This document shows, piece after piece, positions 15,750-20,062 of a stretch of DNA of 64,000 nucleotides. Location of the stretch: assembly GCA_039096225.1 (NCBI GenBank), contig JBBPEB010000020.1:310001-374000 (forward strand). Reading direction: 5' to 3'. A program made the translations under genes and the position numbers. The notes under the pieces were generated by a model, which worked only from the letters and a program-made list of their open reading frames with translations, did not search any database and was not told where the DNA came from. Source of the DNA: Blastocystis sp. Blastoise. Taxonomy: Eukaryota; Protista; Bigyra: Opalinata. The first letter of the stretch is position 1, and the number at the start of each line of letters is the position of its first letter.

Positions 15750-18700
15750 TATATAGTTCAACTTTAGAGATATTATCCATTTATTATCATTTATAATCTT
15801 ATATGTATATCAACAATTAGTGAACAATATACGAAGGAAGCTATTCAATTATTAAGCCAATTAAATGATAAACGAGGTTGTATATATATATTATTATTAT
15901 GTTTATTATATTATATATACCTATTATTATATATATATAGGTTTATCTATGGAGAATAAAGTTTATTGGTCAGAGATTATTCATTATATGTATATAAATG
16001 TATTTGAAAGAAATACTATGACGGATTCCTTACAACAACAAGAATATGTATATATATATATATATTATTATTATTATTACTATTATTATTATATAGTTAA
16101 TTTCAATATTATCTGAATTGATTCCTATATATAAATATTATTCTATGATTTTAGCTACTTTTGCAGATATATATATATATATATATTAGATTATTATACT
16201 TTATTCATATTATCTATATATTAATACTATTTATATATATATGTATAGATATATATACATCATTATCTCCTGAGAGTCCTTACTTTTCATCCTCTCGCCT
16301 TCAGGCCCTTATGCCTACCCTCGCACCACTTCTCGCCTCCCCTTTACATACACATCGTCTTCATGCACTTCGTATTCTAAAGAGCTTCCAACAACTTGAT
16401 GTATATATATATATATTATTTTATATAATTTTATATAATAATAATAATAATAATAATTATATATATATATAGTCGTCTTCAACCTATTGAAAGATCTGCC
16501 TGTATATATATATCTTCATAATAATCATTATATATATATATATACATTCTTATAGTTACTTCTTATAAGTCCCTCACTGACGCACTCCTCCATTCCTCAA
16601 AGAACGTTAAGGCTGGCTATAATTCCTATACTATTAATTGTATATCAATCTATATATATATGATTCTATATATACTTATATTTATAGTTGATTTATTAAT
16701 TGTTATTATTCACGGGAATATAGTCATGTATCTAATTTATTTTCCTATTTATTACCTCGTATCCCGCCAAATGAGTATAAAACAGTAGCTATCTATGGAT
16801 AGTATATATATATATAATAGTATATATAATACATGAATAATATATATTCTGTGTATTTTCTGCTAATCTTCTTATTATATATGATCTATATATAAATATA
16901 TATATATAGAAATACTGGTTTATTGACTGTGAAATTGGCGGGAAGTCTTGCTTTGATTCAATTCATCAATATTAAGCCACTTTTCAACAATATATATGCT
17001 CAATCAACTCTACAGAATATGTCCGATATACATAATGTATATATATGTAGTTCTTATATAACTAGAAATACATTAAATAAATTATATAAAAATGGAATAA
17101 AGACAAATTCTTATATACATATTCAAATACTAACAATGGACTGATATTAAGTTTAATTGAACAATCTAAAGTCAGATGGTATATATATATATTCTTTTTT
17201 AATCTATTTATCAATATATATATATTAGGACACTATCTGAAGACTTATATGCTTCTTTTCCCTGTCTTTATATACATATATACAATTCCCCCCTATCTAT
17301 ACACTTATTGATACTATGCATCAATTATACACGATCCCCGCGGGGATCTGATGAGCAACGAAAGTCAAGACCGACTTCTTCTAGACAATCTTGATTAGTA
17401 TATTATATATTATATATTATTATATATTATTATATATTTATATTTATTATAATATACTATTATATTATAGGTATAAGAATAACAAAGATTACACTCAATT
17501 CTTTAACGATATTATAAGAATAGTGAGTGATGGTATTGCTCTTTATTCTCTACTCCGATTGGGTCTCAATTCTACATATATACCTACTCTTATTGATCTG
17601 TATATATATAACTATCTATATATATAACTATATATATAACTATATATATATAACTATATATATATAACTATATATATATAACTATATATATATAACTATA
17701 TAGGTATTTACAATTACCCTTTGATTTGATGATTTCCCGCGGGGTTGAGAATGTTCATAGTCGTAATCTATTTGTAGATAGAATCAATGGAGAAGCTACT
17801 ATGAAGTATATATATATGTATAGTATTTTATATAACCATATATATCTATTTTTTCTCACTATATATACCTATATATACTTTTATATATAGTGCCATTATT
17901 AATTATTTATCGTTCAAAGCACGTCCTATATCTGACAAAACTGTTCTTCGAATTCTAAAGCAAAATATCGAAGTAGATCGTCGTATGTGACGCATACTGT
18001 GTCATTCTCTTATTTTTCTCTTTTTAATCCTCTATTATAATTATACTTATTATTATTATTCCACATATTATTATGCTTATTATTATATATATTCTAGCTA
18101 TATATTCCTATATTTATTCTAGCTATATATTCCTCTCTTTTCTAGCTCATTTCTCCTTCTTACACTGGACATCCGTCAATACTTCACTTCCTCTTTCTCT
18201 CTCTTCTCATTCATTATGATTAATAACAATGAACCTCTCGTGACTTCCTTGGCGGCAACTATCGACGCGGGAACCAAATATAAGAATGTATATCTATTAC
18301 AAGAACAATTGAATAAAGATAATATACATGATTTATATGATAGTCCTGAATTCCTTAGATATCAAGTATATATATATAATATTATCTATTATTACTATAT
18401 TTATTACTATACATATTCTATATTTATTACTCTATATATATATTACTCTATATATATATATATATATATATATATATATATATATATAGTATGTAGATAT
18501 TCCATCATCTTCCCTCCTTCTTCTTCCCGCGGAATCCCTTAATGAACTGCTCTCCATAGTGATGACTACTTTCCTATCTCTTAATTCCCCGCGGGACATT
18601 CTCTTTGTCTTACAACATTCTTCGATGATCCCTCTATTTATCCTTCTTTATATCTTGTAGAAGACACTGTTTAAGGTATATATATATATAAATTAGTTTG

Positions 18701-20062
18701 GATTATGATGTCATTCTCTCTTATTCTTTTAGTTTTATATATATATATATATATAATTTTCCTCCCCTTTACAGATTCTCCTGTTGTTCCACTTCGTTAC
18801 TCGCTCTCCCTTCATCCCCGCCCTATATACAAAGACTTTACAAGTATTCTTAGATAGAGTTGGATTAGCGAGTAAAGACTCTAATTATGTATATATATAT
18901 AATAATAATAGTATTATTATTGTTTTTGTTTTTTCTATTACTCTCTATATATCATTAAAAACATAATATTAATACATATATAATTATATTTCTCTATAGC
19001 ACAATACGTTACTCTCTTCGAACATTCTTCGTATCGACATACAGAGCGTCATTCGACCCGTGCATCATCATTTCCAATATAAAACGGATGACCATGATTG
19101 TACATATACCATGACTATTAAGGCGAAATATGAATTTATGGAGAAACTAAAGAAGAGTCCAGATGATGAAACAGCACAACTTATTTACTTAGTACCTGAT
19201 ATAGAAGATAATTCATCTTATCCCTTTGTAGGTCCCGTAGATCTATTTAATGTACTTACTAACCTTGAAAATGTCCATGTATATATATATTATAGTATAA
19301 TGAATATAATATATAATATATATACTCTATTTTACAAATAATAATAATAATAATAATAATAATAATAATAATAATAATAATAATAATAATAATAATAATA
19401 ATAATAATAATAATAATAATAATAATAATAATAATAATAATAATAATAATAATAAAGATAATAATAATAATAATAATAATAATAATAATAATAATAATTA
19501 TAATTATTATTATGATTATAATAATAATAATAATAATAATAATAATAATAATAATAATAATTATAATAATAATAATAATAATAATAATAATAATAATAAT
19601 AATAATAATAATAATAATAAGAATAATAATATATATATAGGTATCTTTAACAGAAGAACGTATAAGAAATGCATATATAGAGAAAGCAGTTCAAATGCTA
19701 TTAACGAAATCCTTACCTGAATGTTATCCTATGTGTTTAGTAAATCATATATTTGGTCTTTATTATTTAAAATGGAATCGTTTTTGGCAGAAATTAACAG
19801 CATGTTGTGTAAGAATTGCGAGTTTTGATAATAAATTATATTGGAATTGTTTTTATGAAAAAGCATATCTTATTAATGGTTATATAGATATAAATATATA
19901 TGATCATATAGGATATAGTATGTTATCTAAAGAAGAAAAGAGATATGGTATTATCTATGGTTTAGAAAGGTTACAAGATAGATATAAACATTATATTAAA
20001 TATTCTACACTTACATTTGTATTGAAACAACGATTATCGATGGGAGAAGAACTACTTTATGG
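15750..20062 (+). pseudogene. UTP20: Captured, rearranged fragments of a UTP20-like (SSU processome HEAT-repeat) gene
   Basis: LASPLHTHRLHALRILKSF, VDLFNVLTNLENVHVSLTEER and LPECYPMCLVNHIFGLYYLKWNRFW resemble successive N-terminal-third motifs of Utp20 (recognised from memory). Many exons do not join in frame. Confidence 0.6.

Follow-up and report, generated by a model that had tools for sequence, protein, structure and literature searches.

We analysed a 64,000-nucleotide stretch of Blastocystis sp. Blastoise (hereafter the window, C28:310001-374000, from a genome of 33.3 Mb in 34 contigs) and found that it carries a decayed, transposon-borne copy of part of the ribosome-assembly gene UTP20. 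The copy is split in two by an insert of ~2.7 kb and lies inside a transposase-bearing Mutator-like element (MULE). The initial annotation, made from the letters of the sequence, had placed UTP20-like exons in this MULE but had proposed that they are permuted, with a re-fusion in the middle of one exon. Our comparisons show that the exons are in the order of the host gene and that the apparent mid-exon fusion results from the exact deletion of a short intron. The features of the UTP20 copy and its insert are the following:

15677..16472, + strand: UTP20-derived part 1, four short exons with their introns, 88% DNA identity to the resident gene on contig C34
End of part 1, + strand: exon ...LRILKSFQQLD (to 16400, 97% protein identity to the resident exon), then the beginning of its TA-rich intron
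16473..19185, + strand: insert of ~2.7 kb inside the TA-repeat UTP20 intron, with GC-richer blocks split by TA-rich spacers
17472..17600, + strand: fused exon 1, from which the 62-nt GT..AG intron of two other copies is exactly missing at 17523/17524
19000..19278, + strand: fused exon 2, singled out by the initial annotation, with the last insert block (19000-19185) followed by the UTP20 exon YLVPDIED...LENV (19186-19278)
19279..20090, + strand: UTP20-derived part 2, with an (AAT)n intron, the exon VSLTEERIRNAY...GEELLYG (19641-20062) and the (TA)n tract where the copy ends, 95% DNA identity to C34

The genome has a complete resident UTP20 gene on the minus strand of C34 (~683162 to 668723), which is matched by the Pfam domains UTP20_N and UTP20. 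Its exons are colinear, from position 11 to position 2609, with a profile that we built from 53 full-length orthologues found using the 611-aa exon of this gene. Read directly, the resident order is ...LRILKSFQQLD, a ~175-nt TA-rich intron (GT to AG), the exon YLVPDIEDNSSYPFVGPVDLFNVLTNLENVP, an (AAT)n intron, and then VSLTEERIRNAY...; the YLVPDIED exon ends in ...LENVP and is followed across the (AAT)n intron by the VSLTEER... exon. The expectation that YLVPDIED directly follows LRILKSFQQLD was thus correct for the resident gene, and in the window the two pieces are ~2.8 kb apart. The profile matched the window only twice, and in order: at 16155-16469 (positions 605-649, E 5e-7) and at 19641-20090 (positions 676-750, E 5e-8). 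Alignment of the DNA to C34 gave two segments, both on one strand and ordered as in the resident gene: 15677-16547 (88% identity) and 19186-20100 (93-95%). The similarity restarts exactly at 19186, the Y codon of YLVPDIED. The comparison by protein pieces was likewise colinear. By all three measures (DNA, protein pieces and profile coordinates) this is not a permuted or scrambled gene, and a colinear alignment is the very outcome that the initial annotation had named as evidence against its proposal.

UTP20 coverage in the window is restricted to profile positions 605-750, i.e., there is no coding sequence complete from N to C terminus. Other copies of the same repeat family run on into the next UTP20 exon, and the window copy does not. 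Pfam searches with eight single exons of the interval matched neither UTP20 nor any other family. Searches of PDB sequences with the 140-aa UTP20 exon and with a 62-aa insert block returned chance matches only; UTP20 is too diverged here for such single-sequence searches to be informative.

The fused exon at 19000-19278 is explained by comparison with other copies. We aligned the junctions of three of them: the window copy, a young copy on C20, and an older copy on the contig of the window (C28:~236-244 kb). The exon had been described as one open frame (19000-19279), and the frame is indeed open over 19000-19338. Two sequences of different origin do meet within it, at 19185/19186, and the 3' part has 97% protein identity to the resident exon. 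At this point the older copy reads ...GATGAAACGGCACAACTTATT, then a TA-rich intron of 53 nt that starts with GTATATATA... and ends with ...TATATAG, then TACTTAGTACCTGAT...; this GT..AG intron lies between ...AQLI and YLVPDIED, and its 3' end is the acceptor of the resident UTP20 intron. The window reads ...CTTATT/TACTTAG: the 53 nt are gone exactly from GT to AG, with no microhomology. In the young copies, the remainder of the intron was lost along with the YLVPDIED exon. The exact deletion placed the last insert block in frame with the UTP20 exon and so produced what had been read as a fusion by shuffling. Since the deletion explains the fusion, no shuffling mechanism is required.

The window copy has a second deletion of this kind. 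At 17523/17524 the loss of the 62-nt intron is specific to the window and joins ...FFNDIIRI to VSDGIALYS..., with a 4-bp microhomology (ATAG). All the remaining length differences among the three copies are ragged and fall within microsatellites.

Neither C34 nor the dozen or so more distant copies of these exons (~76% identical, several of them near contig ends) contain the insert that separates the two UTP20 parts. When the insert was compared in six frames, on both strands, to the UTP20 profile and the resident locus, nothing significant emerged. Genome-wide protein searches with two insert blocks had matches in ~27 copies of one repeat family only, and the 62-aa block had no genome match beyond this family at E<=1. 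Single-exon searches of the insert blocks in Pfam and PDB were negative, as was a search of the exon at 18147-18365 against 5.8 billion proteins. The initial annotation had taken the mosaic style of the region, which it also saw in an unrelated CACTA element, as a sign of a shared shuffling mechanism. The intact resident UTP20 has the same short GC-richer exons and TA-rich introns, so this style does not speak for shuffling; genes here have many short exons with TA- or AAT-repeat introns between them. The G+C content (23% in the window), the long variable introns and the abundant low-complexity DNA agree with what was described for tortoise-associated Blastocystis isolates (PMC12129017).

Exon-like blocks of the insert contain four CCGCGG sites (17345-17354, 17735-17744, 18527-18532 and 18590-18596), which is unusual at 23% G+C; at least one of them reads CCGTGG in the young copies. 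Two candidate features of the insert were rejected. A hammerhead-like CTGATGAG...GAAA at ~17357 had no Rfam match at E<=1. An inverted 12-mer resembling the hAT-type terminus described below (18658-18669, 10 of 12 positions) was considered as a right end, but ~0.2 such matches are expected per 6 kb by chance, and a right end at this place would divide the insert in two.

A third family of UTP20 fragments was also found. It has about a dozen copies that are 75-77% identical to the exons ...LRILKSFQQLD, YLVPDIED and VSLTEER; these follow the exon order of the resident gene and lack the 2.7-kb insert (C26:18216-18645, C17:14319-14766, C14:19328-19719, C13:1344900-1345343, C13:1321476-1321919, C14:1305170-1305959, C19:971119-971889, C25:1032490-1033049, C31:1362515-1363073, C16:2149620-2150135 and C17:890684-891452). 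Several are within ~20 kb of contig ends, which suggests that they are subtelomeric repeats.

The UTP20 copy and its insert are the cargo of a larger block, 13672-20090, whose left end is the terminus of a hAT-type transposon:

13672..13786, + strand: nested hAT-type terminus, the start (CAGTGTCTTCCC...) of a non-autonomous element, opening the cargo block
13787..15676, + strand: internal carrier sequence not derived from UTP20, common to other copies of the family and absent from the resident UTP20 locus

The terminal stretch recurs at at least seven other loci (~91% identical), and CAGTGTCTTCCC at 13672 fits the short terminal inverted repeats (TIRs) of hAT elements, of the type CA(G/A)nG. 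The same terminus family is represented in the window by two 181-bp miniature inverted-repeat transposable elements (42535-42715 and 48290-48470), which are 98% alike. These have inverted ends of the form CA(A/G)TGTCTTCCC (CAATGTCTTCCC and CAGTGTCTTCCC) and perfect 8-bp target-site duplications (TSDs), AATATATT and AATATAAA. An 8-bp target duplication is a hallmark of hAT transposons. At the cargo block itself, only the start at 13672 remains to be compared, the right end being gone. The block of the older C28 copy begins with a variant of the 13672 terminus, and the young copies have a homologous right terminus ~440 bp past the end of the UTP20 fragment. From the shared left terminus and the right terminus of the young copies, it follows that the cargo sits in a ~9-kb hAT-type element, truncated in the window within the (TA)n tract at 20063-20090. 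The window block has no hAT transposase domain, i.e., it is non-autonomous. Putative tRNA-like Pol III units at 14590-15035 were rejected, as ARAGORN and Rfam (E<=1) returned nothing.

The block has ~27 copies, mostly within a young 16.2-kb hAT transposon present in at least 17 copies that are 99.9% alike. This transposon has CAGGG termini, an 8-bp TSD (AACAAAAG), and a 693-aa open reading frame (ORF) with the hAT dimerisation domain (PF05699, 22.3 bits for a cut-off of 21.4). The inside of the element is 91% identical to 13787-20100 of the window, indels counted. Its UTP20 fragment reaches to about profile position 1211 and is broken by a frameshift. In the young copies, the large UTP20_N exon (C20:340213-341540) is frameshifted into two ORFs of 206 and 219 aa, whereas the resident exon is one ORF of 611 aa. 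Hence, the multiplied cargo is a pseudogene there too.

Divergence between the copies is uneven. Over 13800-15670, the substitution distances are 8.9% between the window and the young copy, 7.6% between the window and the older C28 copy, and 5.8% between these two copies. Over the insert (16473-19185) they are 2.3%, 4.3% and 4.3%, respectively. The nearest relative of the window copy thus switches between the two regions, and these distances indicate that the window copy is a mosaic of lineages, presumably formed by recombination or conversion between transposon copies.

The family is transcribed and spliced. The initial annotation had recommended a check of RNA coverage, and we aligned RNA contigs of two studies to 17720-19330 (one, X2, is on record as a polyA gut metatranscriptome; the RNA label of the other, X1, is a guess). 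The contigs cover the GC-richer blocks of the insert and leave out the TA-rich spacers; their GT..AG joints are 17805>17891, 17982>18146 and 18888>19000. One contig omits 18366-18489, and contigs pass from 19281/19282 into the exon at 19641. The RNA-supported exons of the insert all have the bounds tatag/.../gtatat:

17704-17805, + strand: RNA-supported insert exon
17891-17982, + strand: RNA-supported insert exon
18146-18365, + strand: RNA-supported insert exon
18490-18675, + strand: RNA-supported insert exon
18775-18888, + strand: RNA-supported insert exon

Searched singly and tracked for phase and stops, these exons gave no long reading frame. The first two (a-b) are open in a different phase from the next two (c-d), each of the three copies compared has the TAG stop at 18658, and the older C28 copy has 1-nt indels. 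The transcripts of the family therefore look like decaying chimeric pseudogene RNA rather than the product of a protein-coding gene.

The block is enclosed by the MULE, which extends from 10734 to 26179:

10734..11289, + strand: left TIR, with a unique tip of ~40 nt (GGGTAAATTCCC...) followed by an array of 29-nt units; TSD TTATATATA at 10725-10733
22635..24140, + strand: main exon of the MULE transposase (Pfam MULE PF10551, E 8.6e-15; Transposase_mut, E 2e-7; SWIM, E 1e-4)
25824..26179, - strand: right TIR; TSD TTATATATA at 26180-26188

The TIR arms are 357 nt long and 97% complementary, and the 9-bp TSD is a low-complexity sequence in an AT-rich genome. These ends and the MULE and SWIM domains bear out the placement of the UTP20-like exons in a transposase-bearing MULE. 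The MULE is essentially single-copy. Its transposase has just two relatives, 78% identical (C15:527628-529019 and 678519-679908), and a second copy was found only for the right ~1.1 kb of the element (window 24707-25823, at C5:935797-936913, 98%). The cargo-bearing MULE therefore shows no sign of multiplication. Its cargo begins at the hAT-type terminus and belongs to the 27-copy module; the right boundary is uninformative on how the cargo was acquired.

We consider it probable that a non-autonomous hAT-type transposon, of which the left two-thirds survive as the block at 13672-20090, carried an interrupted UTP20 fragment, was nested in the MULE, and lost introns. In this scenario a hAT-type element would first have taken up an internal, intron-containing fragment of the host UTP20 (~3.9 kb). 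A sequence of ~2.7-2.8 kb would then have inserted into the TA-repeat intron between the ...LRILKSFQQLD and YLVPDIED exons. The hAT-type element would have become nested in the MULE and would later have been cut at the (TA)n tract. The spliceosome reads the GC-richer blocks of the insert as exons and its TA-rich spacers as introns, which accounts for the spliced polyA transcripts of the family. The window copy has lost two of these short introns, each exactly from GT to AG. Several points weigh against this account. The right end of the nested element, and with it the TSD, is absent, which leaves some doubt between nested insertion and direct capture by the MULE. The two intron-less junctions (17523 and 19185) rest on a single assembly, and the RNA contigs may stem from any of the ~26 relatives as well as from the window copy. 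The uneven divergence along the block (8.9% vs 2.3%) implies that its history also includes recombination or conversion.

It is very improbable that a shuffling mechanism common to other elements permuted UTP20, bringing its N-terminus in front of the YLVPDIED exon and joining the two within one exon. The 5' half of the fused exon (NILRIDIQSVIRP...) had been taken for this N-terminus, and its best local alignment does fall on the resident N-terminal motif (NILRIDIQSVIR vs NEIKLDVLQTIR, 4 of 12 identities). The score of 25 is, however, at chance level: it was equalled by 185 of 1000 shuffles, and the best score against the N-termini of the 53 orthologues was equalled by 51 of 200. This half had no profile match at E<=10 and no match on C34 in the genome search at E<=1, the other insert blocks likewise lack UTP20 matches on both strands, and where the re-fusion was supposed to be, the older copy simply has an intron. 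A direct capture of the Pack-MULE type would dispense with hAT insertion, the MULE having copied the block from a hAT copy by gap repair or template switching. The (TA)n microsatellite at 20063-20090 is a plausible site for such a switch, the window lacks a right hAT terminus and its TSD, and the divergence pattern of the copy is mosaic. Yet the left boundary is, to the exact base, that of a genuine transposon terminus also found independently elsewhere; the 8-bp flank at this boundary is ATTAAGGC (13664-13671). Insertion predicts such a terminus-exact boundary, whereas template switching would produce one only by coincidence, and the older C28 block also opens at a variant of this terminus. 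We thus regard direct capture as unlikely.

The route of the intron losses is a separate matter. Recombination with reverse-transcribed spliced transcripts, instead of genomic deletion, is a possibility to which we give some weight, although we think it rather doubtful. Both deletions, in a single copy, have GT and AG as their exact limits, microhomology is absent at 19185, and the family gives transcripts that are spliced at sites of this kind. But six introns between the two that were lost are kept, whereas loss through complementary DNA usually takes neighbours together. In addition, the ATAG microhomology at 17523 fits a microhomology-mediated deletion, and the tracts are unstable TA-rich repeats. 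A broader conjecture would have the neutral pseudogene lose both introns by recombination with its own spliced, reverse-transcribed RNA, and the chimeric polyA transcripts of the ~27 copies act on the resident UTP20, e.g., via small RNAs; we hold this combination to be distinctly unlikely. It is barely credible that the assembler collapsed the TA-rich introns. Low-complexity TA tracts are error-prone in long-read assemblies. However, a collapse normally shortens repeats, and here it would have had to remove a tract exactly, including the flanking G...G of GT..AG, on two occasions, while longer TA tracts nearby are intact.

With these results the claim of permuted exons falls away, and with it the new shuffling mechanism that it would have called for. 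What the window shows is mostly ordinary, a gene fragment of a known kind multiplied by transposons, with one neat detail in the exact intron loss. It gives a clear view of how transposon events were layered in this very AT-rich eukaryote of the gut: a hAT-type element probably acquired a host fragment, orphan sequence interrupted the fragment, and both a hAT and a MULE came, probably by nesting, to enclose it. Transposons here multiply and express a fragment of an essential ribosome-biogenesis gene, and in this genome a TA-rich spacer is sufficient for the splicing machinery to treat it as an intron. Because exact intron loss can be followed among neutral copies that are almost identical, the family offers a handy natural series for the study of this process.

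One of the closest known systems is the young 16.2-kb hAT transposon. Its cargo module matches that of the window: some of the upstream sequence is followed by UTP20 part 1, the 2.7-kb insert and part 2 of UTP20, and the substitution identity with the window insert is 97.7%. The window copy differs in being older in its left part (8.9% divergence) and in being located inside a MULE rather than in an autonomous hAT element. It keeps the YLVPDIED exon and the left terminus of the nested element, both of which were lost in the young copies, but it has two exact intron losses and nothing past profile position 750.

The comparison with plant Pack-MULEs (e.g., those of rice), made in the initial annotation, holds in part. 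As in these elements, there are long Mutator-type TIRs and a TSD within the range of 9-11 bp (here 9 bp), which enclose an intron-containing host gene fragment (88-95% identity to UTP20). Chimeric transcripts, from a fragment fused to unrelated sequence, are a further shared feature. Pack-MULEs are non-autonomous, whereas the MULE of the window keeps its transposase, as had been remarked, and is essentially single-copy. Moreover, its UTP20 fragment is part of a ~27-copy module with a hAT-type terminus, probably sits in a nested hAT-type element, and was probably not taken from the gene by the MULE. The host is also not a plant.

The intron losses resemble the precise intron loss known from plants, flies and nematodes: short introns were removed exactly from GT to AG, the frame was kept, and one of the two junctions has microhomology. 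Here they occurred in a transposon-borne and apparently non-coding pseudogene copy. Hence, selection for the reading frame is an unlikely explanation of the precision of these deletions.

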